Assembly (NCBI RefSeq): GCF_037042905.1
Contig: NC_087262.1
Span: forward strand, 5,766,001 to 5,830,000
Direction: 5' to 3'
From: Lytechinus pictus
Taxonomy: Eukaryota
Length of the DNA: 64,000 bases
Part shown: piece after piece, positions 34,707 through 63,977 of the stretch
Position numbering within the stretch: the stretch's first letter is position 1
How the letters are laid out: each line of letters opens with the position of its first letter
The notes under the pieces: generated by a model
The model's database searches: none
Seen by the model: only the letters and a program-made list of their open reading frames with translations
Told to the model about the DNA's origin: nothing
Translations under genes and position numbers: made by a program

Positions 34707-34940
<234 letters not shown>

Positions 34941-36166: not shown

Positions 36167-38394
36167 GTAGGCACCCGACCTTCCACCCAGGTCAAAGGTC
36201 AAATATTGCACGTTTCCTCCCCGACCCTCTTCCTTCTCCCTCGCCCTTTGGAATGTTCCCTCCTTTACCCCGTATTGGTTAACACATACTTGATGTCATT
36301 CTCCTCTCCGCCCCTCCTCCTTGGATCTTAAGATTGCGCATGTGTCTTATCAGCATGTGTAGCGCACTTTGTACCACTTACGTTGGGAATCTGTGGACAC
36401 ACCAAATCGATGTGTAACACTTTAGTTCGTAGAAATCACTGGGAAGGAGTCCTCGGATGGAACACATTGTCTACTGGGGTGGGATGATTCAGTTGTATTA
36501 GAATAAAAATTGTAAAATAAAAGCCCCTGTAGGATTGTTAATAGACTGAATTGTTTCCGGCCATGTGGAGTGGGGATGGAGGATGCCAATAAAGTTAAGG
36601 ATTAAGTAATCGGTACTTGCCATTTCCTGGAAATATGAAACATTCCATATTTGAGTGGAGACTACCTCATTGCTCCTAAGCGGATGAAACGATGCTGTCG
36701 AAATGATGTATGGTATGGGTTATTCATGAAGTATTCCTATGTATAATTCGTCTGACGATGCCATGAATGATGATGCCTTAAAAAGAAATAATTCCAAGAG
36801 TATTCCTTAAAGCCTGTCTAAATTGAAATCCATCATTCATAAGACGCTTTTATTTGCTCTATACCAATAGTCGATCAAAACATTTTTCTTTCATTGACGC
36901 GATAAAGGAAGCAATGTATGCCTCCTGTCGAATCCAATCGAGGATAACCCATCGGGCTGTGTTTGATTATAGAATTAAATTTACGATTAATGGCGAAGAT
37001 TGAGCATCGTGTAATTTGATCGTATATGTTACTATGATTAATTTTTTATTGTCGTTATGATCAATCTATGCACCTTGCCACGTGCCTCTTGCATTTTAAA
37101 GCACATTCCTATTAACACGTTTCAGGTTTAATCTTTCCTCATTCTTTCGTTTTCAGAGTTTAACATTGTTGTTTTTGCTTGTCCCTCCTTGAAGCCAATA
37201 TTGTTAATCAGTCTTTGGAGAGAAAAAATGAAGGCGATGGGGGACAGTGTAGTATGCGTTCATTATTTTTTTCATTAATTTTATTTTTCAAAGAGTTTCT
37301 TATTTTTTTATATTTCACTTGTAACATTATGTTTCGTACTGTTCTTTTGTTTAACACATTCTTATTCTAGTTTGGTTCAAAATATGGAAATATGGCAGCT
37401 TTTGGATTTAGAGAAGTTATTGCTAAGCCCGAGTCCACTCTTTGAAATAAATCTGTTATCAGAATGACAGGAGGGGAAGTTGTCGTAAGGACCAATAATC
37501 ACCAAAAAATATTTAAAGACAAACAATGCTTCGCTTAACCCCCTCATATAATCAGAGTAATTATCAAATGCAACTTCACTCTTAAGTTTATACACAAGGC
37601 ACTCACATATATCCCCCCCCCTATTTTTTGATATCTCCAACGACAAACATTGTAAATCTCAGACACTTTAATAAACGACTAACAATCAATCGCACTGCAA
37701 TGAAATTGAGAGAACAGGGTCATATCTTTTATCTGAATGGTAGGGTATGGTCGTCAACATCATTTTTCCCCCTTGGAATGTTCTCTGTTTTGGCAAAGCC
37801 ATTGAGAATCGAAGTATCAGCTTCATCAATATTCATAGGTGTTAGCACAAATGTGTTTTGTGAGATATGGTTGATCCAACCGATCTAAATTATGGAAAGC
37901 CAGAAAGTCCAATATCTAAACTGCATATATATCTGTTCAACGTGTTTTCTCGATATTATGCATAGGCCTACTTCTGCAAGCATCAATGTCTTGACAAATT
38001 ATTGTCCCCAGCAATTCCAAAAGGACACTTTTCCTTTTCAAAGAATCATGACATTGATGGATTTCCATACTTGAGTTTGATTGGATCGGTCACAACTCCA
38101 TGAAAGACCAAGACATGATGTTGTACATTTGAATATTAGTTTGTTGTATGGGGGAGGAATTGGAAGAATCAGGGATAACAAATGAGTATGAATGCCTGTG
38201 GATTTGGTGTACACCTCAATATGAATGAATTATGACTCGTGATTGTCATTCAAAATGGCGCAAGTCTAATGATGGGATAAATTGTAGGGATAAAAGAAAT
38301 TTGCTTACTATGTTTTGTACGAACATGTGAAAAAGGGATATGATAATGTATGTTGCTTTGAAAATTAAGATAAATACCCATTTTTAAAAGAGGG

Positions 38395-38785
38395 TTAAGC
38401 CCAGCGCACACTTTGCGATTCGTTGCGATCCGATTTTGAAAGAAATTATAATAACATTGATATAAACATTCCAACCAATAAAATGTTAGCGATCAGAGAT
38501 AAGAATAGTGGTAAGACTACTGAAATCAAAATTCAGTCTAGTTCGAGCCTCCCTGTAGGAATAAGAGCAAATTGCAATGACGTCATCGGCTGCGATTTGA
38601 AGCTGATTTGGACATTACTCCGACAACCGGGCTTGCCGCAAAGCAAAGTAATGACTTTATTATTCCTTACAATATGCCGAACTTCAAATAAAGAAACATT
38701 TCTGGGAACTTTCATATTTGATACAAAAATATGATTTATCAAAAAATTGCATCGTATCGAATCGCATAGTGTGCGCTGGGCTTAA
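38395..38785. mobile_element. MITE with ttaagcccagcgcacact / agtgtgcgctgggcttaa termini
   Basis: Perfect 18-bp terminal inverted match. Confidence 0.88.
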
Positions 38786-39529
38786 TTGATAGCTTTTCAT
38801 TACTTGATTTTCATTGAAATGGCACTTGGTTCCTTTTGGAACAGAAGCTTTTAAATGCATCTCTTGACTTTAATTCAATGTGATATTAAAGAAGGAGGGG
38901 GTGGGGACGGGTGAGAAGTAATGGATTTCATTCACAACCACAAAACGAGCATGATCAATAGCATGCGGCAGGTTGGTTTATTCAAGACAAACCACGCGAG
39001 GTTTTTCGGTGTATCGACCGTTAACATTCTATCAATATATTGATGTCTCAATTCATCCTAAGCATGATACTGTATCCTGTTAATCAAGACTCTTTTATCT
39101 GTATTCGTGTCATTGTATTCTAATCATTTGCCTTTTCTTCCCCCTCACCCATTTTTTCCCCCTTTCTTTTTTTTTCTTCAAAACTACCCCATGAAATTAA
39201 TTCCCGTGATGGCATATTTGACGGTTGGGTGTGATTTTCCTTCCAATCTATACTTATCAACGAAAATAACTTTTGTGTGGATTCGTTTGGACTTTTTAAC
39301 GTATTATTTGGATGCCATTTTCGTATAACATCATCTGACCTTCTCAAATCTCAAATTTATGAGCCATAATTCACTTAATCTAAACTTAAAACAAATCATT
39401 CAATTACTCGATGGACTGCTCCCCACCTGTCTAATCCTGACCCAATGGCAAATTGATCCTTGCCAACAACCTCTGGAATTATAAAATTAAAATATAAAAA
39501 ACAAATGGATTTAAAAAAAAACATGCCAG

Positions 39530-39580
39530 GTCTATACAAAGACAAAAATAAAGTCAAAACTCAAGTAGTGCAAAGGAATG
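39530..39580 (+). CDS. PPP3CA: Candidate 51-nt alternative cassette exon (GLYKDKNKVKTQVVQRN)
   Basis: Phase 1-1, no stop, ATG|gtaagt donor. The cag acceptor follows a 439-nt stretch containing a single AG, with a distant ctaat branch point and pyrimidine tract. No adjacent polypyrimidine tract. Confidence 0.55.
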
Positions 39581-40628
39581 GTAAGTTTGTAAGGTCGTTG
39601 ACCCCTCTTGAGGTCGTTGACCTTTTTATCTTACAACGTGTGCCTAACATAGTTGATATTTACATCATGGCACTGATATATATATACTCGGAAAGCAGCG
39701 TGTTGTGTGAATTTGACCCATTCCTTTTACTAACAACTGACCAACAATATTGAAGTGGCCTCTTTAATATATGGTGAAGCTAACTCACCGGATGATAAAT
39801 ATTACCTTTGAATACTAAATTAGGACATTTATTAAAAAGATTGTGTGGGATAGAGGGGATATTGTATCAATGCTGTGTATGAAATTGAGAGAGAAGAAAC
39901 AGGGAAAAGATTTTGCCATATTTGCATACAGCATTGAGTAGAGTTGATTTTGTGAACAAGGTACTAGTATATAAATTAAATTGTGTCTTTTGAAAGTTGC
40001 GTACAGGAAGTCTTGAATCCTGTTGAATGCATTACTCTATTTGAAGCAATTTTATCGTCTTTTTGGAGTCATGATACATGTAGTTCCAGGGTCCTTATTT
40101 TAAAAGTATTTCATATTTCCCCTGGCAATATTATAAACATTTTACTTTGTCTAAGATTTTTTATATTTAGTATAATAATACTTCATTAATTCTAGAGTGT
40201 ATGATTTTGCATTGATATGTCAGTCATGGTATTTTGTATAAAAGACTAAGAAATATTCCTTAAATAAGATATGAAATAAGGCTCTGATAGTTTTTAACTG
40301 ATTCAGATGATGTTTAAAACTAGATATATACAGAAGTTGTTTAAAAAAAATTATGTCGAGCTTAAATTCTCTTCACTTCACAAAGATGACCTTTTATTGG
40401 GTTAAGTATTTCAGTAGGTTCGTATTTATTCTTATTCCCATTTCTCTCTGTTCTCCCCCTAATGTTCTTTCTATCCCTTCTATTTCTTTGCCTTTCCCTT
40501 ACTTGTTATTTCTCCCTCCCTCCTCTCTTCAACATTCTCCTCCCCTCTCTCTCTTTATCATTCCCGCTCCTCTATCCCTTTCTTCTTTTCTCTCTCATCT
40601 TTTACTCTTTCTCTATCCCTCCCCCTCT

Positions 40629-41135
40629 NNNNNNNNNNNNNNNNNNNNNNNNNNNNNNNNNNNNNNNNNNNNNNNNNNNNNNNNNNNNNNNNNNNNNNNN
40701 NNNNNNNNNNNNNNNNNNNNNNNNNNNNNNNNNNNNNNNNNNNNNNNNNNNNNNNNNNNNNNNNNNNNNNNNNNNNNNNNNNNNNNNNNNNNNNNNNNNN
40801 NNNNNNNNNNNNNNNNNNNNNNNNNNNNNNNNNNNNNNNNNNNNNNNNNNNNNNNNNNNNNNNNNNNNNNNNNNNNNNNNNNNNNNNNNNNNNNNNNNNN
40901 NNNNNNNNNNNNNNNNNNNNNNNNNNNNNNNNNNNNNNNNNNNNNNNNNNNNNNNNNNNNNNNNNNNNNNNNNNNNNNNNNNNNNNNNNNNNNNNNNNNN
41001 NNNNNNNNNNNNNNNNNNNNNNNNNNNNNNNNNNNNNNNNNNNNNNNNNNNNNNNNNNNNNNNNNNNNNNNNNNNNNNNNNNNNNNNNNNNNNNNNNNNN
41101 NNNNNNNNNNNNNNNNNNNNNNNNNNNNNNNNNNN
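40629..41135. other. Assembly gap within a CT-rich low-complexity tract
   Basis: N characters. Confidence 1.
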
Positions 41136-41406
41136 CTTCCCCTCTCTTTCTATCGCGTCTCCCTCCACCTCCTCACACTGAAGTATCTGTGTCTTTTTAA
41201 TCTTCTGTCCTCCCGCACCTCGAGTCACATCTGACCTTTATTATGGTTCTGTATCTGCTTTTATTTCTTATATCCGTACCTCTTTGTCAGTCTGTCAGTC
41301 TTCTCCACCCCCTGTCTGGCCCTCTTATCCCGGAGAATCATGTGTCTATCTTTCTCTTTTTACAAATGATCTGTTCATACATGACTCTCTCCCCCTCTCT
41401 TTTATT

Positions 41407-41833
41407 AGACACCGTTCTCATTACACTTTCTAAAGCCAGTTAAACGGAAATCGGTTCAGGAAACCAGTTTGGACGATCGCTCTGCTAGCGTTCCCATTTG
41501 ATCAGCCGAAAGTGGTTCTCAAAACCACTTCACGTAAAGTGGTCTTGTTACTATAGGAACGCTCTCAGTGGGGGTCACATGTTTTGCGCGAAATTGAAAC
41601 AGCAGCGTATGCATTCTACACACAGTGTATCAGTGTATGGAGTAGCGTGCTCAAACTGTGCGAAGAACGGTTGTGTCCTCACTTACGCCAAAACCAGTTT
41701 AACTAGGCAAAGCGATCTTGAAAACTACATCGCAAGGTGGTTTTATGAACCGCTTTGGAAGATTGCTTCCAAGACCGCTTTGACTGCTAGTTTCCACTAA
41801 ACTAGTTTTAGGACGGTAATGAGAACGGGGTCT
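41407..41833. mobile_element. MITE (agacaccgttctcattac / gtaatgagaacggggtct)
   Basis: TIRs and internal aaacc/ggttt subrepeats. Confidence 0.82.
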
Positions 41834-42057
41834 TGGTCTCTATTCCCCTTTCTTTCTCCCCATTTCTCCATCTTCATTATGTCTTTCTCACCCCAGTATT
41901 ACTGTGTGAAGGACCTGAATAATTGATACAGACTTTTTCTCACTTTCCATTTACTCTACCACATCTGCTCCACACCTTCTTCAGAACTTGGCTCCCTCCT
42001 TTCTAATTGCCCTATCAACTATGTCTTTTCGGGGTAGCTGGAGGGTATAAACCCAAT

Positions 42058-42375
42058 GGCCCGTATTCTGAACTCGGGGTTAAACTAAGCCCTGGTTTAA
42101 AGTTGTGGTTTAACTATGGAGAGCCAATGGGGGCACAAATCCATAACAATACAATCCAATTTATCAACTCATTTGACACCCAAATTGTTCATAATTGTCA
42201 AGGAATGATAACTGAAGTATTTTGAAGTATTATTCCTCATTATGAAAGCAAAATGAAACAAAATAGTAAACATAAGAATACAATATGAACATAATTTTTT
42301 GACTTTTGGCTCCCCATAACTTGAGCACAGAGTTAGACCATGGTCTAAGTTAAACCTGACTTCAGAATACGGGCC
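42058..42375. mobile_element. MITE (ggcccgtattctgaa / ttcagaatacgggcc)
   Basis: Perfect 15-bp TIR. Confidence 0.85.
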
Positions 42376-43200
42376 CATGTCAACAAGCTAATTTCTGATT
42401 TTCCATTTTACTTTATATATATCTGGGACCAGGATTGTGATCATCAGCCCCTTTAACCTTTATAAAAGCACAGAATATGAACATTAACATCTTCTAGGGT
42501 TTTTTAAATAAATATGAAGGCCTTTTTAATCTATTACTTTTTTTTTGGTTTGAATTAAAAATGGATAAGTTTGTTGTAAAATCCCGAGAAGTAAGTATGT
42601 ATAGGTTATTCAGTATCTTTTTTTCTAAAAAAGCAAAACAAAACTATCAACTTAGAAATTTCTTAGAATGAATTTCTAGTATTCTGGTGTATTACAATTT
42701 TTCTTCATATAAAAAATTGATAGAAAGAAATATATATTTTTTTAAAACTTTTTTATTATTTTTCATCTTGTTATTGCAGTATTGCCAGCATGGAGAAATC
42801 AGTGAAATCATTTAGCTCAAGTTTTTTTTTAAATTGTAAACAGAAAATTAAGACTTATTGTATTGATAATATCATTTTGATTGTAGTGGTTACCCAATTA
42901 TATGTATAAGAATTAAGATATGTGTATAAAAAGATAAAGCATATTTTAAAATGCAATTTTGCTTTCTGTTTGGCAGTGGTGGACCTCCCTAAAAAAAGTG
43001 AGTGAAAAATTATGAGATCGTGAATTCATTAGGTGTATGTCTTGGTAAAAAAGAAAGATTAACATGGGAATTATGGATGGGTACACTAGTATATGGAAAT
43101 TTTCATCCAAGAAACATGATGCATTGACGTTAAAAAAAGCTGTTTTCAAAGAAATGTTTTCACGCTGTCTTTTCTCGTAGGTGATCCCAGCCGATATCTA

Positions 43201-43329
43201 GGGGTGTATTTCATGAAACAAATAGTTGGTGAACTTCACTGACTATTGTTATAAGCTTCTGAAATCCTTGCATCTGATTGGCTGAGAGCAAATTAGTCAG
43301 TGACAAAACTTTTTGTGAAATGCTCCCCC
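43201..43329. mobile_element. Short MITE family F (related pieces ~3750-3868, 10466-10600, 12775-12880)
   Basis: Shared gaaatccttgcatctgattggc core and ggg..tttcatgaa termini. Confidence 0.7.
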
Positions 43330-46300: not shown

Positions 46301-48504
46301 ATATTTTATCAGTAAATGGACAAAAGATAACAAGGTGTCACATGTTGGAATATATTTAAATTCTCATGATTATTATATATAAATATACCATTTATTGCAT
46401 ATTTACTAAATTCATATCTATTTAATTTTTACATTTGTCCCATAAAATATCCCGAAGGATCCATGTTTTATATCGAGATATGGCCAGATAGAAGATTTTT
46501 GAAAATTTGGGGGTCTTTTATAAGAAGGAGGAGCTCTTCAATGCAAGCCATGTTAGAAGCATGCTAATCATGCATTTTATTGAAAGTCAAAATGATTATG
46601 ATTTCATTATTTTTTTGTCGTGCTTGTCATTTATTAAAGATCTGCATTCATTTTAGAAGAAGTTTCATTCTGACACCACGCACTGAATTCATTGCATGAT
46701 GCGTGAATGCACAGTGCGCTTTGATCATGTAGACAGCGCACTTTGCATGATCATCGCATGGTTTCATGCCACCCTTCTACCAATCGACACACCCGCCACG
46801 CCCCATGAGTGCCACTCCCATCAGTGCCACGCCTATCAGATACACGCCCATTGGTATCTGTTTTTACACTCCCACCAGTGAGCACTATTAGGACAGTTTG
46901 AAATTGTCTTTATCAAAATTTTAATATTGATCAAAAGAAAACAAAAAGCGAATACTAAATATTCAAGGGACGAAAAAGCAATAATTTAGAGAGAATCAAA
47001 CATTTTTTAAAGTCGTCTGTCAATGATTTCATCTTGACAGAATAAAAAACTCTTTCACCAAAATGAATATAGTTAGTATAATATCCAAGTCCTTTGGAAG
47101 CGCATAGAGACGTTATTCATTATGTGTTATGCGCTATACAAGAACTGACTATTATTATTATTATTATAAACCAAATTTCACTTCAGTAATATCCAAAGTC
47201 CTTTGAAGCTTATACAAATACATGTATTAGCTCATTAAAATGATATACACCTTAAGAGATTTTACTACTCTTAGAATTTAATCTCATCTTATTCAACTCT
47301 TAGATATTTAATGAATCATATTTAATTTTGACAAATTTACCCCTGAATATTACTGCAGGAACATACAATCAAGTGCTCATTGATTGCAAAATATTTTTAG
47401 ATAAAGAGTAAATGAAGAAAAAATTAAATTTTATTCTGATGCATACCAGAATGGGATGATGTCTGGGAACCGTTTCAAAAAGCTGTTCATACATAAACTA
47501 TAAACGACTTTACTGACCGTCGATGAACCGTTCTTGTCTATTTGAAGCCCAAAATTTCCGTCTTTTGGATTTCTTAAAACCTTGATAAAGTTTTGAAAAT
47601 TATTAAATTTCCATTCAGATGCTTGTTGATAATTAGAATTTTAATCCACATAGATTGAATTTTAATCCGCATAGATGGATTTTTATTTGAGCTTATGGGA
47701 ATCAAAATGATTGAGAAACTGATTTGCACTCTAGAAAGGATCACCAGTTGTTCATTAAGTCGTTCGCAACCTGCAAACAGCTTTGTGGAACACCACCTAA
47801 GGACCAGTTTACACAAAGCCTTGTGATTGATCATAGGGCTGATTTTTTTATGCTTGATTGCATTGATAATGATATACAATCAATCCCAAAGTCAATTGTA
47901 TAATTGCCAGGCTTTGTGCTACTTGCCCCAGGTGGCTGTTTTTATAAAGCTGTTAGTAAGTTATGAGCTGCTTTAAAAATGACTGGTGAACCTTTCTTAG
48001 GAACTTAATCAATACCTCTGAAAATCTGGGCCCCGTCATACAAAGAGTTGATCCAATTAATCGTAACTCTATGGAAATCCATTAGTGTCATAATGTTTTC
48101 TATATTTTCTAATTTGCACAATGTCCTTTGTAAACAAAGAGAAGCACAGTGAATTTTCAAGAAAACAATGAGTGCATGAAATACGCATCATAGTTTGAAA
48201 ATAATTTGAACAAAAATGCACAATAGATGTTGACGTTGCTGGCCATCCATAGATGCGATTGATTGGATCAATTGCAACTCTTTGTAAGACGTGCCCCTGG
48301 TGTATAGCGTCAACATCAAGAAAGGATCACCGATCATTCGTAAAGTCGCTCGTAGGTCGTGAACAGCTTTATGAAACGCCCACCGGGTGTGTTTTTGAGG
48401 TGGAAGGGTGGCATGAAGTGTATTTTTCTCTCTTTATTTTTGAGAGGAGTTGATGTATGTTTAATGGTTGATCACAATGCCTCCTACCATGTGTGTGTTT
48501 TCAG

Positions 48505-48534
48505 ATTCTACCACAGAGACTAATGCAGATCCAG
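48505..48534 (+). CDS. PPP3CA: Candidate 30-nt microexon (DSTTETNADP)
   Basis: gttttcag acceptor, CAG|gtaaga donor, phase 1-1, in frame. YCAY cluster downstream. Confidence 0.72.
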
Positions 48535-51500
48535 GTAAGACGGAGAGCAACGTAACCCCCCCCCCCACCCCCCCCCACCCCCAACACCCCTCTTTGCCAT
48601 CTTCATCCATCCCCTCATCTCATCCGTCCATCTCTTATTCTTCCCTCTTTCTTACATTCCCCTTTCCTGTATCCCATTCTTTCCCCCTATCTTCACTCCT
48701 GTCTCTCCTGTTAAGTATTTGGGCTGATCGGGCACTTTCTATTAACGGTTATAGTCTCTATTATTCTTTAATATTGGCCTTTCATTCATTAATCTTTCAT
48801 CCATTGTGCCTATCTATTCGCCAACTCTTCTCTCTATACTTCTATGGGTATAAGGGCACTTTCCATTAGATACAGCTTTATATCTCTAATATATATATTT
48901 CTCTTAATTCAAAACTTTCATGGATTTTTGCTTCCTTCTGTCTATACCTAACTACCCCTTGGTATTATTATTTTTTTATTGAAATCATAGGAACATCAAT
49001 GTGGTTAACATTCCTTTTAGTTAGTTCTTTTATTTAAATTTTGACCTTTATTCTTTTGATCTTTTTTATTTATTTTTTACCCTCAAATTTTGTTTTTCTG
49101 TAATAGTTTCTGTCCACCTTTTCTCTCTCGCCTTTTGGTAATAGGCATTTTATTTATATATATATATTTTAAAATTGAAATCCCCTTCTCTTTGTTTCTG
49201 GCTTTGGGCACTTAAGTATAGGTACTTCATTATTTCTCCTTATTTTTATGACCTTTTCAATACTTTTTTCCTACTTCCTCATATCATTCATTTTCTGTCG
49301 ACTCACCATTCAACCATCCCCCATCTCTCTTCCTATTTTTGTTTTTGTTTTGGAAACCGAGCACTCTCTCTCTCTCTCTCTCCCTCCCTCTCGAACATGT
49401 AGGTATAGATTCCTTTATAATCAACTTTACAGAGGCAAGAATGGTTTGTTTAAAAAAATAAAATATCAACATTGTAACTTTTCTAATTTTTCATAAAAGA
49501 AGAATTAAAAAAAAAACTTCAATGAACTGATAACTGTTTTCATATATAATTTCTTAGTTTAAGTTCAGATAACTTAAGGTGGGCCTCCATCAAGCATCTT
49601 TGATTTATGATTTGAAGCATTGCCCTACCTGATCCCCTTCCCCCCCCCCCCCGGCCCATAAAGAAAATGAACAAATGAAAAGTGGAAAACATTTCTGCGT
49701 TTAATTCATTTTATTTTCTTTAAAACATTCATTAATTTTAAAATTTTCTTTTTAAAAACTTTTTAGCTACAATATGTTTTTCTTTTACAAATCTTTTGTC
49801 TCATTCTCCCTTCAAAAATTCTTAACTCCTATTCTGTTCTATTCTAGGTTCTAATCATATAATCAAATCTTTCCATATATGTATCAACTAATTATTGTCA
49901 AGTGTATGAATACAATACTAAATCCATGTGCTCTCTCTATGTGGCTGTAACAGTAATATACAAACATGTATATTCTCTTTGTTATACTTTCTATCTATTC
50001 CATGGGATTTATAAAGATTACATAATAATGCATGTGGTACTATCATACTTCTGACAGGTTGTTTTGTAATCAATGTATTGTCTTTATTATTAAGAGCTTT
50101 ATGCTATTATGCTCCAAAGGTGCATATTTTCTTTCAAGATTGTTCATCTGAAGGTTCTAAAAGGCAGAGTAGGTATTTTGCAGCAAAACAGTGGACTTGG
50201 CAGAAAATGTATTAAAGTAATTTAAGGTCACATACAAATAATTTTGAAGACACAATGTGGCATAATTATTCGAATCTACTGTTTGATTGAAAACCCATCC
50301 ATTCCACCATTCATAGAAAGAAAATCTTTCAAAAACGTGACTATTACTATGAAAAAATTATTTCTTCGGCAAAAATTAATCTGTTGCTGATGAAAAAGTA
50401 TTTATGAAATGCACAGCCTTTTGAAAGAAGTAAAATTTTCAAGGCATTCTGTTCTGAGTATGAGTATAGTGTTCATCGATGAAATACTTTGGTGGAATTT
50501 GTTACCCGTCATGGGGTAGGGGGTTAACAGAAATATTCCGCTTCCGTTAGTTTTTGTTAACGTTATTATTGAATGAGAAAAGTTTTTCAGGTACTTCACA
50601 AAAAGGTGGCCATTCATCTGGATTTACTTTAACTGATAGGAGTTAATATGAAAATATGTTCCATGTATGCATTATATTCTATGTCCTTTTTTAATACTCT
50701 AGTAGATAAATTGTTTGTTTTTTAATGTTTGTTCATGTATAATCTACAAAGCAGTGTTCATTAGCCAGAAAGTGTTAGTATACAGATTAAGTATGTGTGG
50801 GTCTTGTATATATTTTAAAGTATTGTGAATGATTAAAATCAATTTCAATTTGAGTCTTTTCCCCAACTCTTTACTTTAAAAGAGAGTTTGAGAGAAATTT
50901 CAAGTTGAAGTTGATATTAATCAATCGCTAGTCATAATAAGTGGGACGGGACCCTGTTTTTTTTTAACCTAAAAAAGTACCCGTTGTAATTAATTATTCA
51001 CTGTTTTTTTTCTAACAATAAGTTATGTATATAGTAACTTCCTTGAAGGCAATTGTATTGATGTTTAGCTTCCAACATTAGTGTCATTGTTATTTTCTAA
51101 TAATATCACTATTTTGTTTCTAATCTCTGTAACCAGTGATTAAAAAAAAAGGATATATATGCTCAACTTTTTTGGCCCAAATTTACACGGGGTTTAAAAT
51201 ATGTTTAAATCCTTTCTTTATTGTGTATGACTGCTGATATATAAGTAAAATGTATTTTTGGATAAAACACTTTGTAAGGAAGCATGAATGCAAAGTTATT
51301 CAGGATCGCTATTCAATTCACATTTTGTTTATGCCATTCTCGAGTATTACGCAAAGTGAACAAAAGCATTGCGTTAAACTTGCATTATCATTATCCTTTA
51401 AAAGTTGAGCATAATATCACGTCGTTGATTGTTATTAAGTTGTTGATTCTGGCGTCAAAAAGATTTTTGCGTCGAATCATACCCAAACATCGCATTTAAA

Positions 51501-51550: not shown

Positions 51551-51562
51551 ATGAGGGGGCAA
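51551..51562 (+). CDS. PPP3CA: Candidate 12-nt microexon (DEGA)
   Basis: tgactaat branch point at 51514, tttcttttctatctttc tract, tcag acceptor, gtaagt donor, phase 1-1. Confidence 0.68.
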
Positions 51563-53496: not shown

Positions 53497-53897
53497 TGGG
53501 TCAGATGCATAAATAGCAGCGATTGCTGGCAAGCAATTGCTTCGAGCAAGCAATAGCTAGCCAAGCAAAAGATCATGCTTCAGCAATTACTTTATTTCAT
53601 TTGCATAACCCTTTGCTAGTGCTTGAACCCTTTTCTTGCCTTCACAAGGCACTTGCTTGCTAATAAAAGGAGTAGTAAGTGCAAACCAAATGCAAACTAT
53701 TAAATATCATTAATTAAAAATGAGTTAAAGGAATAGTTTCACATCACATCAGACATGAAAAGATGTTAACTTGAGAGAAGCATTTTTTTTTCCACTGCCG
53801 TCCCGTTGCATTCGAGTCCCTCCTTTGTGAAGTCACCAATGTGACGTCTCTATTGTTCAAACCGCTAGCAATTGCTCCTTTTTATGCATCTGACCCA
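53497..53897. mobile_element. MITE (tgggtcagatgcataaa / tttatgcatctgaccca)
   Basis: Perfect 17-bp TIR. Confidence 0.83.
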
Positions 53898-55634: not shown

Positions 55635-55652
55635 GTAAAGCCCTTAGATTTG
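55635..55652 (+). CDS. PPP3CA: Candidate 18-nt microexon (G/S-KALRF) or recursive-splice exon
   Basis: About 70-nt AG-free pyrimidine-rich tract, tcag acceptor, TTG|gtatgt donor, phase 1-1. The exon itself begins gtaaag. Confidence 0.5.
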
Positions 55653-57981
55653 GTATGTAGTTGATCCTGTCATATTTTTGTGTGTTGTGTTCACGTATAT
55701 TATTTCCAGGCGGTTTAAAATCAAACGTTATTCGAATTCTGACGAGAGTGAGTGTGAACGCAATAATCCTTTCCAACTGCGAGTGTGGATGCCATGTTTA
55801 GATCTATCATTTATAAAGAGCAGTTTTGGGTGCTCTAAATGGTAATATTATGTTCTCCACGAATCTTGGTGTAAATAGTTATTTATTTTTATTTTTTCCT
55901 CACAAAATCTGAGCAGAAATGTAAGTGTAAAAGAGATATGCCCAGACTGCCTGATAGTTTGATGATTTCTACCATGACGATACCAAAAAGTTAACATAAA
56001 TACGTTTTATTGAAATGTTTGTAATTTGTTCAAATTAGATTGACTTTCCTGATGAGGAAGTCTCATTGAGTAGTTTTGCTTCCGGTGCATGAGAATTTAA
56101 TCTGAATAAAAGTGTAGGAGGCCATAGTCATAGGTAGCCAAAAACTCAAAAGAAATATGAGAAGGGGATTCAACATTTTTATAACCTTGAAGATATAACT
56201 TTATTTTCCCCCACTCTCCATGCACTTTTCAATGTGTTCTTAATTCAGAACAAGAAATATCATTTATTAAAATTACTTTAAGGATTTCAAAAATGTGTAT
56301 GTAAACCAACTTTGAAATTGCCTTCTTTGTCAAAGTTTTAAATATTGTCTACAAAAATAATTATTGTAACTTTATTGAAGTATTTGTCCTGCGATAGCTG
56401 TATGTTTTTTTTTCTATACTGAAGTTTTGCCAACTGCTCACAGATGTCTTCACAGTTTCTCTTAGATTAAAACTGAAATAGAACTTTATTTCTTCCCTAA
56501 GATAAAGTGAATCAGTTGGGTGCATAAGAACTGGGGGGGGGGGGGGTGCTTAGATTGTATCTAGTGTTGAATTAATAGCATTAATATGATATAAGAGGAA
56601 ATCACCATTTAAAGAAAATTGATGTCATTTCCTTTCAAGCTAAGTTCAGAAGTAAAAGGTGTTTCATTGCTAATGAATGAATCCATTGGAGTGAGCTTCT
56701 TAAGATTGGTTTGAGCATGCTTGGAAGATTATAAGTATTTTAAATATTAAAAAAAAAATGATGCTAATTGAGCTCAGGGTAATATTTTTCTTTATAAAAA
56801 ATTAAATAACACAAGAAGAGAAGAAACCTAATGAATGGGAATATTCTAACTACAATACAAATTAATGTTATGATACACTCCAGTTTAACCTATTACCAAC
56901 TGGAACTGGACAATTCAAAGTCTATAGGAATTATAAAATTCAGTTGTCAGTTGGTTAAAGCTGTTATTAAAGAATTGGCGGGCAGATACTAGTCTGTTTA
57001 AGCTATGTTTGTTTTTTCCTTAAGTTTTTACTGTGCTCCTGTCTTGTGCTTGCCATGGTGAAGAAAATTATTGTAGGTAGCATTCCCAGACAATTTTTAA
57101 AGAATAATTTCAGTGCCAAATATGCTGTTAAAATGAAAATTTATTCTTATAGTCTTTGCCACATATGACATTTAGCTGTCCATAGTCAAAACTACAAGAA
57201 AGGAACACTAGTCATTTGTAATGTTGCTTGTAACTTACATCTTCATGAAACACCCACCTGGGACCATAAGTTTGATGGTAACAGAAGTATATGCCAGGGG
57301 GCCGTTTCATAAAGCTGTTCGTAAGTTAAGAGCAACTTTTAGAACAACTGGTGATCCTTTCTTACTCGCTAAATAATCATCAACATTTAATGGTGAATAT
57401 CATTTACCACAAGAAAGGATCACCAGTCGTTCTTGAAGTCGCTCTTAACTTACGAACACCTTTATGAAACGGCCCAAAGGCACCCAAATCTAACGCTTGA
57501 CTTGCTACCCTCTTCCAAAAAACAAACAAAACAAAAATTTAAAAAATATATACCTATAGAATATGGATGAATGAATGATGTGAAATAATGATTAACAAAA
57601 TGGTAAATAGAAGAAATGAAAAGAGAAGAAGAATTGAAGGAAAAACTGAAAAGACATTTTACAGAAAAATGAAATGAATTGTGCTAATGGGGAAAGAGTT
57701 TTGTTTAGACTGTGTGGAATTAGGGCACCAATTAGAAATTCATTCCATTGAATAATCTTTGGTTCGGGTTAGTGTACATTTGAAATGTGTTTCAAATATG
57801 TCTTATTTGATTACTGAGATGTTTGCCAAATTTGCAGCCCCCGTCTCCCCCACCCACCTGCTTAACAGCATGCTTGAGTGCTTATAATTTGAAGTGAACT
57901 TGAAGTGTATCTACTCTTTAAAGATAGGGAACGAGAAGGCATTTAAAATAAAATTGATTAACTAAATGTTTAAGATTTTTT

Positions 57982-58117
57982 NNNNNNNNNNNNNNNNNNN
58001 NNNNNNNNNNNNNNNNNNNNNNNNNNNNNNNNNNNNNNNNNNNNNNNNNNNNNNNNNNNNNNNNNNNNNNNNNNNNNNNNNNNNNNNNNNNNNNNNNNNN
58101 NNNNNNNNNNNNNNNNN
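57982..58117. other. Assembly gap
   Basis: N characters. Confidence 1.
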
Positions 58118-60633
58118 AAAGCTTGTTGGGGGAATCAACGTTGAGGAGAACAGTGGGGGTTATTCCAGGTGATGTGGAGAGGAGTTGGATCTCCGCTAGC
58201 GGCAACTATGATCAATGATCAAATTCCCCTTTGGTAGCATTTGATATAAAATAATAATTATTATATGAGTAATTGACAAGTGATTAAAGAAGTTATGTTT
58301 AAGATTTCCATTTGCTGTATATGAAATTGACTTATTAAGAATTAACTCTGAAATGGTCTAACAATGAGGATACGACTTCTGTAAAAAATGAAAAATAAAT
58401 AATAAATCTTTGATAAATAAAGGTATGATGAATAAGTGTTAACAATAAACCCTCATTAAAACCAAAAAAAGCTCATGTGAGTGAGTTTGGCACTTAAGGA
58501 AAACCTCTGAAATACTCCATTCTCTTCAAAGAAAATCCTGGATGAAGCAAAGATTTAGAGTGTTGAATAAATGTGTACCTAAGAAAGTTCCCTGTGGTAT
58601 GACATATCTAGTTGTGCTCTGTGTATGAAAAAAGAAATGTATCATTTGACAATCCAACACTTTTTTGCTACTCTCAACCCCTTTCTGCACAAGTTTTCAT
58701 TCAGGGCCATTTGCATAATATGTGTCATTTCACTTTGATTCATCATGTTTTAAGTGCTATTTTACATCATCATGGTTTCACATCATAAATGACAGATACC
58801 AATCTGGATATCAATTAAGGAATTTGTGTTACCTCATCAATTTAAGGTCATGTGAATTTGTGGTTGATCCTTGCAATCACTTGAACTACACTTAAAAAGT
58901 TTATAAGACGACACTTCTTTAGTTTTTCTTAAAGTACCATGCACATAATATAGCGATCAGTTTCAATACTTTTGAAAACAAAAATACATGATAAAGAACA
59001 CTTTCTTTCCATTTCTTCTCGTGAATTTGGTCATTCGATTTTCCATAAACAACCATTGTCCTCCCCATTTGTATTTTGCTGCCCAAATTTTTTGATGTCA
59101 TTATTGTAAATGGAAGTTGTTATTTAGATCAAATATATTTGATATTTCTTAATGATAGAACGTAGGTATAGGCCTAAGTGAATCAATGTTTTTATCATTT
59201 TGTTCTGCATATTCAGTGAGATTGGTATTATTTTTTTATAGAAAACATATTCAATTCAGAAGAATGAAAAGTTAATGTATATATTTATTTTAGCTGGGGC
59301 TTATTAGAGACAACTATCAGATCATTTCTTATTTAATGTCAAAGTTGATGAAAGTTTCAATGTTCTTCCTTGATTTTCTCTGTTTATTCACTCTGACTTT
59401 ACATGGTGGTGGACTTGGCCTGAATGATTATGATATTAATTTTCTTTCTTCCTGTAATATTCAACATCTCATCACCCCCGACCCCCCCCCACCGTTTTCC
59501 GTACTCCCTTTCAAATACTTACATCAAAGATCGTTTGGTACTTCATTCCATAACCTCCCTATGTCTTACATTTCTACTGGAATACTAAGTGTTTTCATAA
59601 TTGAAATCAGTTTGTCACAGTTTCACACAGTGTCTTATTATAACCAAGTTAGTGAAATTGTATATAGTGTAACAAATTTTGACCTAAGACTGTCGAATGT
59701 CTATAAATATCACAAGTTTCATAGTTCTTACGTCTCACTCCATTCGTTAGATAGGCCTATTGTATTGTCATGGTATGAATAAAAATGAATTCGGCTTTGT
59801 AATTTTAACCTCCAAAATGGTATTTTAACCAATTCATGTCAAAATTGTTTCCTCTTGAATTATTTTTTTGGCAGCTTGTGAAGAAAGGTGGCAAGTAATA
59901 GGGGAAACCAGTGTCCAGTAGTTGATTTGTCTGCATTTTTGGCACCTACTAAAACACCTACTAAAACAAAAACATAAACAAAAATGTGTCAAAAATAATA
60001 TTGCAATTCCTTTTCCCCACCACTGTAGCATGAATCCACACACTGTTATCCAGTAAAAATAGTTAGCATGAAATTATACTTAAAGGCCACCGCACACCCT
60101 ACGATTTGGGTGCGACTCGATTTTGGAATAAAATGTAGTAGAATTGATGATAATATTGTGACATGGAATATCTTACTGTATAATGCTCTAAATCATCTTC
60201 CGAATTTACCCATGTTCAAATCTGTGACTATGCTATCATCCTTATTAGAATAAAAGCAAACTTATCATCTAGTTATAATGATGTTATACCAATCATACGA
60301 TTGGTTACGATTTGACACCAATTTGGCCTTTACTCCAAAATAAAGACTTGCAATGACCAAAAGTGTTATATTAGTATCCTTACAGTTAAATATGAACCTG
60401 AAATAAAATGATACTTTTCATTCACATTTTCAGAAAATTAGCAAAATGTGATATGTTCCAAAAACGGATCGAAGGTGTGCGATGGCCTTTTCTTATTTGA
60501 TTATCCATGATTTTAAGTACATTTGTAAACCAAGGTTCAATTCACTTTACTCTGTTGAATGAGATAGATGTCTGGTTTCTAAGTGTAATGGTTAATATTT
60601 AAGAAGGCAACTCGGTCATAATTCCATGCTTGC

Positions 60634-61228
60634 AGGACAAATCCACCCGAGCAAAAAGTTGATTTGAATAAAAAGAGAAAAATCCAACAAGCATAACACT
60701 GAAAATTTCATCAAAATCGGATGTAAAATAAGAAAGTTATGACATTTCAAAATTTCGCTTAATTTCACTAAACAGTTATATGCACATCCTGGTTGGTATG
60801 CAAATGAGGAGACCAATGACGTCATCCACTCACTATTTCTTTTGTATTTTATTATATGAAATATTCTAGTTTTCCCCTCATTGTCAAATGGAACGATTAA
60901 TTCCTACCTGAACATGTGGAATTAGCATCGTTTGATACTATATGGTTCAGTCAAGTTGCTTCTTGTCAAATATATGAAAAATAAAATATTGTATAATTCA
61001 AACAATAAAAAACAAAAGAAATAGTGAGTGCAGGACATCATTGACTGTCTGTCTCATTTGCATGTCGCTGAATTTGGCATATATCACTTTTTTGTGAAAT
61101 ATAAGCGAAACTTTAAATTGTCATAACTTTATTATTTTCCATCCAATTTTGATGAAATATTCAGCGTTATGCTAGTTTGATTTGTCTGAATTTATTTAAA
61201 TAAACATTTTCTGAGGTGGACTTGTCCT
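60634..61228. mobile_element. Kolobok/T2-like MITE, opposite orientation to 8544-9143
   Basis: Same TIR family; right end gtggacttgtcct-ttaa. Confidence 0.85.
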
Positions 61229-63399
61229 TTAAAGAGTACTTGCAGCTCCCATCCTTTGTTAGTGTGCCAGTGTGAGACCTATGGGCAAGAAGAGGACCCC
61301 ATTACATGATGCTCAGCAATTGATTTTAGGGCTGAGTTTACGATTGATTTCATGGATTGATATGTGCAACTAATTGTTCATGTCAACTATACGATTGATT
61401 CCAAAGCTTTGTGTGGCGGGCCCTTTTTGTTTTGTGGCGAGCGCTAGCATAAAAGCTATTATGTACCTAGTGGGTGTTTCATAACGCTGTTTGTAACTTA
61501 AGAGCGACTTTAAGAATGACTGGTGAACCTTTCTTACGCACTAAATAATCACCAATGAACATTTATGGTGAATATCATTTGCCACAAGAAAGGATCACTA
61601 GTCGTTCTTAAAGTAACTCTTAACCTACAAACAGCTTTATGAAACGGTACCCGGTAATATCATCTACATTTTATGAATAGCTAGCGCTAAGAATTTCAAT
61701 TCAATTTCATTTGGTTTATTGTAGGGTCCGGATATAGACACGTACAAACTTCATGAAATTTTAGAAAAATACACAAAATAAACAAGTACTTGCAAATTCA
61801 CAAAATGCCAACAAATAACCATCACAATTATGTAAAAAGGTATCATAAATTAGATATTGCATTTTATGTTGATGTACTTGTATGCACTAATTCAAAAGTT
61901 AAAGTGAGAAATCAAATTTGAGCTATCAAAAATAAAAATTGATAATAAAATAACCCACAACATTGTTACGGTTTGCATTGACATGAGAAAGAAAACAAAT
62001 GTAAAAATGTAAGGATATATTGATTCTTTGTATTGAGGAACAATCGTAAATTTGGCAGAAATTAACAAATTGAGCCACTTCCCAACTAGCCTTGTTTGAA
62101 GGCTTCCATTGACTCACAATATTTTGGTGTAGGTGCTCGATACTCCGCCATGTACATATAGGTATGCTGTGATTTTCAAGTGTCTTCATTTGGTGTAATT
62201 AACACCAAAGATAACACCTGTTAAGACCATGTGGTGAAGGCGCGCTTTTATGTGCCGTGGCATTTTACATAAAAAAGTTGTGGTGGCAAACCAGAGCATG
62301 GGGTCCTATGAGAACTTTATCTTTCCTGCATTTCATAATCCAGTTATGACTCCAAAAACTTTAAAAATTCTTTGAAACTTAGACAGAAGGATGTTAATAA
62401 ATAACCAATTGACAATTCATCAATAATGCATTATTTTCTCTTTCTCACTTGTTTAAAAGTAACAATTTGCTAATTATGACAATTCATCAAGTACTTGAAA
62501 GTTTTTGTTTTACAATTCAAATCAACTTTTTGTTGGGGTGGACTTAAAACCTTTAAAGATGATGAAGGTTTGAAAATTTTCTCCTTTTTAAAAGTGTAGG
62601 AAATTATTTGGATGGGAACCAAAGGTTTTCATGAAAAGGTAACAGCTCACTGGGATGAATGTGGCATTAAGCACATCACAATTGATGTTTCTGATTTTGA
62701 ATTTGATCTTAGCTATTTGGGGAATTTTGGGGGAAATGCAGATCAATGATGGAGCCAAACACAGTTACCTGTCCAGCAAGACATTTTAATTGATTATTCA
62801 AGAATCAGAAATAGATTTGTCATTAAAATTTAAAACCTTGGTTATTTGAAATGTACATGTAACATGTCCAGTGAGATATAGATTCCTGTTTGTAAAAGCC
62901 CACCCATCAACAAAAACTGTATGTCTATTCAAAAGACGAGTTGTCCGTCGATACTTCATGCATTATTTCCAGAACTGTTGAAGTATGTACTTTGAACCTG
63001 TCTACCTAGAAGGTCAAACCTGCTCTGGTGACCTCCTCGTTAGCAATACCGCATGTCTTGAAAAGACCACAAGTTCTGTTTCCCCCTTTGAATTGTACCC
63101 CCATTGAAACCTCTCTATAAAGACCACCTGCTTTGATATTAAGACCACTTTTCTTGTCTTACTTTGGTGATCTATACAGGTTTAGTTATACCCTTGTCCC
63201 TCATATGAGTTGTAGCAGGTTTCACTGAGAAAGGTTTAACATTTTGCAAGGGCCCTGTAACATAGAGATTAGTGATCAATTGTCAGGCTCATTTTATGTC
63301 TGATCACTCGTAAAACTAAGCCCTACGATCAATCGCAAGTTTTTATGTCATAGGGGCCCTTGGTTCCCTTATGTGATTTGTACGATTGATTGCAATGAT

Positions 63400-63888
63400 A
63401 ATAGTGTCTGATTGATCGTAAATATCAACCGTATGATCAACTGCTGAGCTTTATCATTGTGTCTGATCGATCGTAAATATCAACCATACGATCAATCGCT
63501 GAGCATTATCATTGTGTCTGATCGCTCGTAAATATCAACCATACGATCAATCGCTGAGCATCATATTTTGTGTCTGATCGATCATAAATATCAACCATAC
63601 AATCTATTGCTGGGCTTTATAATTGTTTGATCGATCATAAATATCAACCACACGATCAGTCGCTGAGTATTATCATTATGTCTGATTGATCGTACATATC
63701 AACCGTATCATCAATCGCTGAGCATTATCATTGTGTCCGATCGATCCTAAATATCAACCACATGATCAATCGCTGAGCATTATCATTGTGTCTGATTGAT
63801 CGTTAATATCAACCGTACGATCAATTGCTGAGCATTATCATTGTTTCTGATCAATCATAAATATCAACCATACAATCAATCGCCGAGT
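63400..63888. repeat. Tandem repeat, ~55-bp unit, about 9 copies
   Basis: Repeated gtctgatcgatcgtaaatatcaaccatacgatcaatcgctgagcattatcattgt. Confidence 0.95.
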
Positions 63889-63977
63889 GTAATGTTACAT
63901 ATACCTGAAGCTTATTTACAATGGTGACAGGAATGCTAATGCTTTACTTCTTCTCCCCCTCTCCCTCTCTCTATCAG

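Follow-up and report, generated by a model that had tools for sequence, protein, structure and literature searches.

A probable array of five short cassette exons and a tandem acceptor in the calcineurin A linker LR1 of the sea urchin Lytechinus pictus

Introduction

An alternative exon in linker LR1 of calcineurin A is of a known kind, as the vertebrate genes Ppp3cb and Ppp3cc possess a 27-nt exon in this linker, exon 10a, which is included in adult skeletal muscle (PMC5577920; PMC12503234). Splicing also alters LR2, where mammalian exon 13 (ATVEAIEADE) and the Caenorhabditis elegans tax-6 exons 13a/13bc are short exons of tissue-specific use with behavioural consequences in worms, and the conservation of LR1 splicing across species has been called largely unknown (PMC12503234). 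LR2 splicing resembles the urchin LR1 array described here, in that short alternative exons make a disordered regulatory linker longer or shorter in the same gene family, but the linker it affects follows the calmodulin-binding helix.

As a functional analogy, CaMKII comes closest to a linker array of several exons in a Ca2+/calmodulin enzyme: several short cassette exons in its variable linker give rise to many isoforms and the length of this disordered linker tunes Ca2+/calmodulin activation. CaMKII is nevertheless unrelated, a kinase holoenzyme whose linker lies between the kinase and hub domains, and its mechanism, regulatory-segment access within a dodecamer, is not directly transferable to calcineurin.

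Results

The window, a stretch of 64,000 nt of the L. pictus genome, contains exons of an echinoid calcineurin A (PPP3C) gene (Table 1). The upstream exon, which encodes (V)TEMLVSILNICSDDELLSDGDDTFE, covers the last part of the calcineurin-B-binding helix and the acidic beginning of LR1 and ends ..DTFE in phase 1 (GAA G|gtaggc; last base 36166). Together with the exon starting GGSAAARK it borders a phase-1 intron of ~27.8 kb which, as a sequence-only reading had noted, is the longest of the window, the remaining introns of the exon map measuring 1.2–8.6 kb. We consider it likely, with a probability of about 0.85, that five phase-1/phase-1 cassette exons (51, 21, 30, 12 and 18 nt) form an array within this intron, with a 9-nt tandem acceptor at its end.

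Table 1. Features of the linker intron and its bordering exons, in window coordinates
Feature	Position	Strand	Evidence or remark
Constitutive upstream exon	36089..36166	+	100% protein identity with Lytechinus models; aligns to spliced RNA contigs L001, L003, L008
E1 cassette, 51 nt, GLYKDKNKVKTQVVQRN	39530..39580	+	Homologous inserts in three species; S. purpuratus genomic counterpart
Assembly gap (N), between E1 and E1b	40629..41135	.	Length only estimated
E1b cassette microexon, 21 nt, VVDLPKK	42977..42997	+	Splice-site scan; peptide in Lytechinus models
Conserved deep-intronic element	46683..46771	+	~98% identity with S. purpuratus; three GCAUG motifs
E2 cassette, 30 nt, DSTTETNADP	48505..48534	+	Models of all four urchin species; RNA contigs L001, L008, L009
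E3 cassette microexon, 12 nt, DEGA	51551..51562	+	L. variegatus X2, X6, X10; S. purpuratus X1, X4, X8
E4 cassette microexon, 18 nt, (G/S)KALRF	55635..55652	+	L. variegatus X4, X9, X12; L. pictus model
Assembly gap (N), between E4 and last exon	57982..58117	.	Length only estimated
Calmodulin-binding-helix exon start, GGSAAARK..	63978..64000	+	Continues beyond window edge; tandem acceptor

The sequence-only reading had proposed E1, E2, E3 and E4; all four are bounded by AG and GT, and their peptides match inserts in RefSeq isoform models. Its count was nevertheless too low, as E1b had been overlooked, and its space of 16 combinations was incomplete, because the tandem acceptor adds a sixth binary choice. 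The claim that the segments are phase 1-1 multiples of 3 with stop-free combinations extends to the whole array, 64 of 64 combinations of five cassettes and two acceptors being stop-free.

E1 (net charge +4) combines a strong donor (G|gtaagt) with an A-rich acceptor that is very weak (-7.0 bits), and homologous inserts are present in L. variegatus (GLYKDTNKVKTPVVQRN, X2-X7), S. purpuratus (GLTNKVKKPSVLPRN, X1-X3 and X8) and Diadema (GLCKESQTHNTPVLQRN). E1b (+1), the second-best frame-preserving segment in a splice-site scan of the intron, encodes a peptide identical in L. variegatus X2, X3, X5 and X9-X11 and in L. pictus XP_054773736.1. Because its last base is A, the first residue of the following exon changes from D or G to N or S, and E2 (-3, carrying S-x-x-E and T-x-x-D motifs) then reads NSTTETNADP. 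E3 (-2) likewise ends in A, while E4 (+2 in its GKALRF form) has weak splice sites and is represented in Diadema X3 by GKGSRV at the same position. At the tandem acceptor, the AG at 63976-63977 sets the start at 63978 and the AG at 63985-63986 sets it at 63987, dropping GGS; the junction forms ..|GGSAAARKE, ..|AAARKE and ..A|TAARKE are found in L. variegatus, S. purpuratus and RNA contigs L001 and L009, and S. purpuratus shares the acceptor sequence gtggttcag.

All five exon peptides occur at the exact junction in RefSeq models of L. variegatus (X2-X15), S. purpuratus (X1-X8), Diadema setosum (X1-X4) and L. pictus (XP_054773736.1) taken together, with at least 12 combinations among the L. variegatus models listed. 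The partial L. pictus model, from the window's own species, contains identical peptides in the combination E1b+E2+E4; support for E1 and E3 comes from the congener and S. purpuratus, and the S. purpuratus models examined are without E4. In L. variegatus, E1 and E1b occur jointly or singly, and combine with all three downstream options. E3 and E4 are never together in any model; E3 is always joined to acceptor 63987, giving ..DEGAT|AARKE, and E4 always to 63978, and E2 is part of every inclusion model except Diadema X2. Combinatorial use, as claimed from the sequence, therefore stands as a stop-free potential but not as the observed pattern, in which E3 and E4 are exclusive, E3 is coupled to 63987 and E2 is nearly always present, and the full-inclusion protein that had been written out is absent from the models.

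Spliced RNA-seq contigs L001, L008 and L009 carry E2, with either acceptor, and the all-skip form is present in L003-L007; the contigs retrieved contain E2 or no cassette and nothing else. L009 and L003-L007 come from one species and one run series yet represent different isoforms, a hint of regulation. Because RefSeq derives its isoforms computationally by chaining junctions from short reads, full-length combinations are supported at the level of models only. The models and contigs show that related urchins splice exons of the array into mRNA in different combinations.

Since the two N gaps lie within the intron, its length is an estimate, and the reading frame is unaffected. Both are more than 1 kb away from any exon (the first 1049 nt from E1 and 1842 nt from E1b, the second 2330 nt from E4 and 5861 nt from the last exon), and congeneric isoform models join E1-E1b and E1-E2 across the first and E4-last and E2-last across the second, in frame. 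Exon order and rough spacing agree with S. purpuratus (E1 to E2, 8.9 kb in the window vs 8.3 kb; E4 to the last exon, 8.3 kb vs 5.8 kb). All linker peptides of the Lytechinus models are explained by sequence outside the gaps, although a further exon may lie inside one of them.

Only 16% of the intron can be aligned to S. purpuratus, yet E1-E4, four of the five exons, fall within aligned blocks with AG, GT and frame kept. The counterpart of E1 (L002:70366-70410) has 45 nt and that of E2 (L002:78757-78786) is 80% identical, less than the 68 nt upstream of E2 (~93%). E3 and L002:81674-81685 are 100% identical and their flanks are conserved, and E4 matches L002:85918-85935 at 18 of 18 positions, with flanks ~90% identical; overall, identity in the flanks of E2-E4 is about 90% or higher. 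A counterpart of E1b was found neither in the S. purpuratus locus nor in its models, and from its sequence distribution this exon looks confined to the Lytechinus lineage. E1, E2 and an E4-like exon are also present in Diadema, which belongs to a distant urchin order, microexons are annotated in the same phase-1 intron of a hemichordate and an oyster, and protein isoforms of insects, crustaceans and vertebrates vary at the same linker point. The proposal of frame-preserving, alternatively included microexons between the calcineurin-B and calmodulin helices is thus borne out by models from four species, by RNA contigs with E2 or with all cassettes skipped, and by exon and flank conservation; inclusion models and conserved segments were found, rather than the direct junction alone.

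The best-conserved non-exonic stretch of the intron relative to S. purpuratus is the deep-intronic element, in which the GCAUG motifs (two of them UGCAUG) surround a 7-bp inverted repeat. With a fourth conserved GCAUG at 46559, all are kept in S. purpuratus, and the element lies within the densest 400-nt GCAUG window of the intron (4 motifs vs ~0.2 expected). It has no Rfam match. The conserved cluster suggests Rbfox, and we propose the element as a candidate site of Rbfox-type splicing control in the array. E2 is preceded by a conserved UGUGUGU tract, and no conserved SRRM4/eMIC-type UGC motifs were found near the 3′ splice sites in the S. purpuratus comparison.

Discussion

Sequence alone is insufficient to separate such segments from chance, and outside evidence decides. 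Within the intron, 837 AG..GT segments of 3-60 nt preserve the frame and contain no stop, the antisense strand yields similar counts at lenient thresholds, and a generic splice-site matrix thresholded at the weakest of the four originally proposed candidates passes 7 segments on the sense and 3 on the antisense strand. The idea that the four were merely open stretches chosen by eye, unrelated to splicing, is nonetheless rejected with near certainty, because they match the inserted peptides of relatives residue for residue, and all four pass a conservation test (alignment to S. purpuratus in which AG, GT and frame are retained) that only 46 of 781 candidates pass, an outcome with a chance of ~1e-5 for four random picks. 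The three top-scoring frame-preserving segments (48505, 42977 and 51551) are all real exons. Somewhat less remote, yet very improbable and largely refuted, is the view that a gene predictor made isoforms out of splicing noise, i.e. functionless cryptic pseudo-exons. It could appeal to the weak splice sites of E1 and E4, to the hundreds of chance segments and to the computed, uncurated nature of the RefSeq X-isoforms; noise should hardly retain sequence, frame and both splice sites in four of five exons, with E3 and E4 unchanged and flanks better conserved than the surrounding intron, nor should E1, E2 and an E4-like exon recur in Diadema; the microexons in the same intron of the hemichordate and the oyster speak against noise as well.

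A more serious prospect, to which we give somewhat less than even odds, is that the exons are real and their use is not freely combinatorial, the RefSeq variety having arisen from the chaining of independent short-read junctions. The isoforms would then be few and fixed, with all cassettes skipped, with E2 only, with E1/E1b ahead of E2, or with E2 and behind it either E3 and the distal acceptor or E4 and the proximal one. The invariant pairing of E3 and E4 with their acceptors, their mutual exclusion, the near-constant presence of E2 and the restriction of the assembled RNA contigs to E2 or nothing all favor such a set, while the independent variation of E1 and E1b in L. variegatus with each of the three downstream options, which requires several distinct read-supported junctions, argues against it. 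Because a fixed set is compatible with the array of five cassettes and a tandem acceptor, it merely restricts the word 'combinatorial'.

Inclusion of cassettes from this array adds 0 to about 38 residues to LR1, directly between an acidic stretch (DDELLSDGDDTFE) on one side and the basic calmodulin-binding helix on the other, in the form of alternating basic (E1, E1b, E4) and acidic (E2, E3) modules. E2 is the core module, with E1 and E1b placed ahead of it and, behind it, either E3 joined to the downstream acceptor or E4 joined to the upstream one. The weak sites of E1 and E4, the highly conserved flanks, the UGUGUGU tract and the GCAUG cluster lead us to infer that cell-type-specific splicing factors govern inclusion. 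The altered length and charge of the disordered tether might change the ease with which Ca2+/calmodulin captures the helix and autoinhibition is released, and E2 may supply CK2-type phospho-acceptor sites. The array may be tissue-regulated and affect Ca2+/calmodulin activation, proteolysis or localisation, as the sequence-only reading also supposed.

That reading knew of no earlier description, which holds for the echinoid array, as no paper describing it was found in the literature, but not for the kind of exon, given exon 10a, nor for the isoforms, since urchin linker variants are already in RefSeq as computed models. It was right to set the array apart from exon 13 of LR2, the ~30-nt exon of vertebrates. 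The urchin exons resemble the neural microexons of the bilaterian SRRM3/4 (eMIC domain) programme in being tiny, frame-preserving and highly conserved, with conserved flanks, and in affecting disordered or surface regions of signalling proteins. They differ in lacking conserved UGC beside the 3′ splice sites, E1 and E2 exceed the usual 27-nt microexon limit, and the vertebrate exon of this linker is muscle-specific rather than neural.

Exon 10a is likewise a short, frame-preserving cassette that lengthens LR1, and it is inserted at the same place, between ..D(Q/G)FD and (V)G(T/S)AAARKE, which corresponds to ..DTFE | GGSAAARKE in the urchin. The peptide E(R/Q)LIYGN(R/K)K that it encodes turns from hydrophobic to basic and loosely resembles urchin E1 (GLYKDKNKVK), a similarity too short for orthology. 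Vertebrates have one LR1 exon per paralogue, of other length than the urchin exons and with no acidic modules, whereas the urchin has an array of five; in vertebrates, too, the acceptor of the following exon shifts slightly (FD|GT.. vs FD|VGT..).

Five cassette exons and a sliding acceptor in the LR1 linker

Calcineurin, the target of cyclosporin and tacrolimus, is the principal phosphatase activated by Ca2+/calmodulin. Its regulatory domain is disordered, and the part that linker length and charge play in setting the activation threshold is a matter of current work. In echinoid calcineurin A (PPP3C), LR1, the linker between the calcineurin-B-binding helix (BBH) and the calmodulin-binding helix, is a modular insertion site with five cassette exons and a sliding acceptor, not a single optional exon, and this set is kept across urchin orders. 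The sequence-only reading had proposed that four segments (E1 to E4) in the phase-1 intron between the BBH exon and the calmodulin-binding exon form a combinatorial microexon array. These segments are as it described them: they are bounded by AG and GT, measure 51, 30, 12 and 18 nt and, like the fifth cassette, are phase 1-1. The cassettes are real and alternative; the array nevertheless comprises five exons and a tandem acceptor, and isoform models suggest that their combination is constrained. The fifth exon, E1b (VVDLPKK), ranked second among frame-preserving candidates in a splice-site scan. That every combination is free of stops holds for the fuller set as well, all 64 being open when five cassettes and the second acceptor are counted.

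Under a strict microexon limit of 3-27 nt, E3, E4 and E1b (12, 18 and 21 nt) qualify, and E2 (30 nt) and E1 (51 nt) do so under a loose limit of up to 51 nt only. The computed net charges are +4 (E1), +1 (E1b), -3 (E2), -2 (E3) and +2 (E4). E2 carries CK2-type motifs (S-x-x-E and T/S-x-x-D) that are kept in Strongylocentrotus purpuratus, the first of them also in Diadema. With the distal acceptor GGS is lost and, where the preceding exon ends in A, T stands in place of the first A of AAARKE (..DEGAT/AARKE), which matches the models exactly.

Splice-site scoring was rejected as sole proof. With a generic splice-site matrix, E2 and E3 score well, E1 has a strong donor and an A-rich acceptor at -7 bits, and both sites of E4 are weak. 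Frame-preserving, stop-free AG..GT segments of 3-60 nt number 837 in this intron, with similar counts on the antisense strand at lenient thresholds, and the matrix fails to part candidates from chance.

Features of the calcineurin A locus in the window
Feature	Position	Strand	Description
Calcineurin A exon	~12061-12178	+	
Calcineurin A exon	16797-16942	+	catalytic domain
Calcineurin A exon	18462-18604	+	
Calcineurin A exon	27177-27262	+	
Calcineurin A exon	32411-32513	+	
Calcineurin A exon	34739-34869	+	
BBH-encoding exon	36089-36166	+	VTEMLVSILNICSDDEL..; in full (V)TEMLVSILNICSDDELLSDGDDTFE; phase-1 end
E1	39530-39580		51 nt
E1b	42977-42997		21 nt
E2	48505-48534		30 nt
E3	51551-51562		12 nt
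E4	55635-55652		18 nt
Eighth exon, start of calmodulin-binding region	63978 to beyond window	+	begins (G)GSAAARK
Distal acceptor AG	63985-63986		exon start 63987
Candidate distal splicing element	46683-46771		
Conserved open segment	50097-50153		45 or 57 nt
Assembly gap	23020-23353		between exons 18462-18604 and 27177-27262
Assembly gap	40629-41135		N run, intronic
Assembly gap	57982-58117		N run, intronic
Decayed partial exon duplicate	16189-16263		75 nt
Copies of exon 3' end and donor	35612-35700, 35811-35842		
Tandem array	63404-63887		55-nt unit, 8.8 copies
Interspersed repeat	9933-10151, 35403-35747, 48253-48450, 57397-57567	+	
Interspersed repeat	61373-61540	-	

Isoforms and spliced transcripts

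A single-exon search of representative proteins returned exon-sized fragments only and no full-length protein. Full-length calcineurin A proteins from many phyla were obtained by a region search seeded with a 307-aa fragment, and sea urchin proteins were reached by a region search with the Logan protein P0335, whose exons closely match the window and in which DSTAEGNADT sits between DTFE and AAARKE. The linker of every urchin isoform fits the formula DTFE, modules, (GGS)AAARKE, and the annotated isoforms add from 0 to ~38 residues to LR1. The peptides of the L. pictus model are identical to those of the window, and E1 of the window differs from that of L. variegatus at 2 of 17 residues, which points to a Lytechinus-like urchin, probably L. 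pictus. S. purpuratus models X1-X8 use E1 (GLTNKVKKPSVLPRN), E2 (DSTAESNADA), E3 (DEGA) and both acceptors; those of Diadema setosum (X1-X4) use E1 (GLCKESQTHNTPVLQRN), E2 (DSTTEGNADP) and an E4-like GKGSRV. The isoform models of the four related species show both inclusion and skipping, as do the RNA contigs for E2, this evidence being drawn from related-species models and contigs. In the models E3 is coupled to the distal acceptor, E4 is coupled to the proximal acceptor, and the two cassettes are not found together, a pattern that suggests a constrained choice at the C-terminal end of the insert, not free combination.

LR1 cassettes in isoform models and RNA contigs (acceptor entered where reported)
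Source	Cassettes	Acceptor
L. variegatus X2	E1+E1b+E2+E3	distal
L. variegatus X3	E1+E1b+E2	
L. variegatus X4	E1+E2+E4	
L. variegatus X5	E1+E1b+E2	distal
L. variegatus X6	E1+E2+E3	distal
L. variegatus X7	E1+E2	
L. variegatus X9	E1b+E2+E4	
L. variegatus X10	E1b+E2+E3	distal
L. variegatus X11	E1b+E2	
L. variegatus X12	E2+E4	
L. variegatus X14	E2	distal
L. variegatus X15	none	
L. pictus XP_054773736.1	E1b+E2+E4	
L001 (SRR6173504)	E2	distal
L008 (SRR3402056)	E2	GGS present
L009 (SRR31798688), protein identical to S. purpuratus X6	E2	distal
L003-L007 (SRR31798687, 89-92)	none	

Several Logan contigs encode calcineurin A without introns and align to the window exon by exon, and they are therefore spliced transcripts. 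Contigs L009 and L003-L007 come from one S. purpuratus-like species and differ solely by a 21-nt net change; within the run series SRR31798687-92, five runs yielded cassette-free mRNA and one run mRNA with E2 and the distal acceptor. That differing isoforms were assembled among samples of one series is at most a hint of regulation. E1, E1b, E3 and E4 were in none of the Logan RNA contigs retrieved.

The two N runs in the linker intron lie 1.0-5.9 kb from the nearest exon and so leave the reading frame unaffected. In congeneric isoforms the exons flanking each gap are spliced together in frame, exon order and rough spacing agree with S. purpuratus across the gaps, and window sequence outside the gaps accounts for all linker peptides of the Lytechinus models. 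A gap could still hide a further exon, and the intron length is an estimate.

Conservation of the cassettes in S. purpuratus

The homologous S. purpuratus intron occupies 67212-91725 of the genomic locus L002, and 4361 of 27168 positions of the window intron (16%) align to it. E1, E2, E3 and E4 each lie within an aligned block and keep AG, GT and frame. This combined test was passed by 46 of 781 candidate segments, many of the 46 overlapping true exons, and the chance of four randomly chosen segments all passing is about 1 in 1e5. E3 and E4 are 100% identical between the species and their flanks ~90%; the 68 nt upstream of E2 are ~93% identical, as against 80% for E2 itself. E1 is 45 nt long in S. 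purpuratus against 51 nt here, the difference being a multiple of three. The KALRF of E4 is perfectly kept in the S. purpuratus genome and is unused by the S. purpuratus models examined. E1b had no detectable counterpart in the comparison of the loci and is not a repeat within the window; judged from these alignments, it looks restricted to the Lytechinus lineage.

A scan of the intron for further frame-preserving exons conserved with S. purpuratus gave nothing convincing past the known ones. One open AG..GT segment, at 50097-50153, lies in a block with ~90% identity to S. purpuratus and keeps its splice dinucleotides and frame. No isoform model seen contains it, and it may represent either an exon missing from the annotation or a non-coding element that is conserved.

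Candidate splicing control signals

Outside the exons, conservation in the intron is highest in a stretch of ~90 nt (46683-46771) with ~98% identity to S. purpuratus, in which three GCAUG motifs surround a 7-bp inverted repeat (AGTGCGC..GCGCACT). With a further conserved copy at 46559, four conserved GCAUG fall within 46559-46760, and the GCAUG density of the intron peaks at 46559-46771; additional conserved copies are at 38949, 39062, 48411 and 50030. Conserved (U)GCAUG motifs in flanking or distal intron are a mark of Rbfox-regulated exons, and at the sequence level the stretch is a candidate Rbfox-type distal splicing element. Rfam gave no matches across the whole window, so the element is not a known RNA family. 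A UGUGUGU tract directly before E2 is perfectly conserved in S. purpuratus. The conserved upstream UGC associated with SRRM3/4 (eMIC)-dependent neural microexons was not found: TGC occurs here at -6 of E1 and -27 of E2, neither of them kept in S. purpuratus, and E3 and E4 have no TGC within 40 nt upstream of the 3' splice site.

Relation to known calcineurin splicing and to other phyla

PMC12503234 (2025), in which the linkers are named LR1 and LR2 (the latter downstream of the calmodulin-binding helix), describes small alternative exons in both in mammals, studies LR2 alone, shows it to be a conserved splicing hotspot with behavioural consequences, and states that cross-species conservation of LR1 splicing is largely unknown. 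The ~30-nt vertebrate exon mentioned in the sequence-only reading is exon 13, in LR2, and is, as supposed there, different from the urchin cassettes. Vertebrate LR1 has its own exon 10a, an exon of adult skeletal muscle, which inserts E(R/Q)LIYGN(R/K)K at the same protein junction as the urchin cassettes; it is 27 nt long, whereas no urchin exon has that length, and E1 shares with it only L-aromatic...K-K, in peptides too short for a homology test. The sequence-only reading, which knew of no description of the array, did not take in exon 10a or the RefSeq isoforms; the literature searched yielded no paper on the array or on any echinoderm calcineurin microexons. The echinoid array is not a new principle, and its exons are already in RefSeq as computed isoforms.

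Isoforms of oysters, clams, aphids, beetles, bees, copepods, hemichordates and other echinoderm classes differ at exactly this LR1 residue, as do those of vertebrates. The homologous intron was checked in two genomes outside the urchins. In Saccoglossus kowalevskii (L010), the upstream exon ends GAA G/gt, in the same phase as in the urchin, a 30-nt phase-1 microexon (ELIGDSVKSK) lies at 40387-40416, and the next exon begins GT GGG TCA GCA.. (GGSAAARKE), like that of the urchin; the LR1 insertion site is therefore common to urchins and hemichordates. In Ostrea edulis (L011), two small exons lie in the same phase-1 intron, one of 12 nt (GTDE) and one of 33 nt (VSDHKDQEKEA). After this intron the exon for the start of the calmodulin-binding helix is present in two tandem copies, from 41810 (..RGTIAARKE..KMTRVF) and from 41958 (..NGAVAARKE..KMARVF), which isoforms X2 and X1 use alternatively; the calmodulin-binding site itself thus appears to be spliced in a mutually exclusive manner.

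These microexons support, without proving, an ancestral hotspot, and they make the loose L-[I/Y/F]...K-K likeness of the basic modules worth testing. We consider it a tentative possibility, with a chance of roughly 0.3, that the LR1 intron is an ancestral bilaterian phase-1 microexon hotspot that first held a hydrophobic-basic module and was expanded in echinoids to five charge-alternating modules under Rbfox-type control. The ancestral module would have had the pattern L-[I/Y/F]-x(2-4)-K-x-K/N, and its survivors would include vertebrate muscle exon 10a (ERLIYGNRK), hemichordate ELIGDSVKSK, insect KLIIKQKN or KLFIQKN, and urchin E1 (GLYKDKNKVK..). If this is true, LR1 is, like LR2, a conserved dial on the Ca2+/calmodulin activation of calcineurin.

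In the skip form, a short, strongly acidic LR1 would adjoin the strongly basic calmodulin-binding helix; the addition of basic or acidic modules would alter tether length and local electrostatics, and these in turn may change calmodulin capture and the release of autoinhibition. As regards anatomy the earlier interpretation holds, although it lacked E1b and the tandem acceptor; the tissue-regulated tuning that it proposed is a hypothesis. The urchin isoforms are a natural allelic series of linker length and charge that can be used for testing models of calmodulin capture, and sea urchin embryos are tractable for such tests because morpholinos and mRNA injection exist.

Gene structure and other features of the locus

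The first seven exons were located by tblastn with calcineurin A proteins and by stop-free stretches; at 84-100% identity to calcineurin A proteins the six before the BBH exon encode the metallophosphatase core (PF00149). The BBH exon and GGSAAARK follow in the order BBH, linker, calmodulin-binding helix, the remainder of the helix lying past the window edge and being found in all orthologues. The intron between them is the longest of the window. No exons for approximately the first 120 residues were found upstream of 12061 (window 1-12000), which places the 5' part of the gene outside the window. Pfam gave nothing for the six longest intronic ORFs, both strands considered, and so no indication of a nested gene.

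Several duplications and repeats were also observed. A decayed copy of the 5' half of exon 16797-16942 lies ~600 nt upstream of it (81% identical), loses the frame after ~26 codons and is used by no model. The 3' end and donor of exon 34739-34869 (..GGTGAAAAGG/GTAG..) are copied within the next intron, possibly as decoy 5' splice sites from a small segmental duplication. The 55-nt tandem array (83% matches) ends ~90 nt before the acceptor of the calmodulin-binding exon and showed no alignment with S. purpuratus. Throughout the gene, on both strands, there are copies of an interspersed repeat that has an open frame (..RKDHQSFLKSLLTYEQLYETP..), and short pieces (~57 nt) of a repeat also match several spots in the S. 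purpuratus locus.
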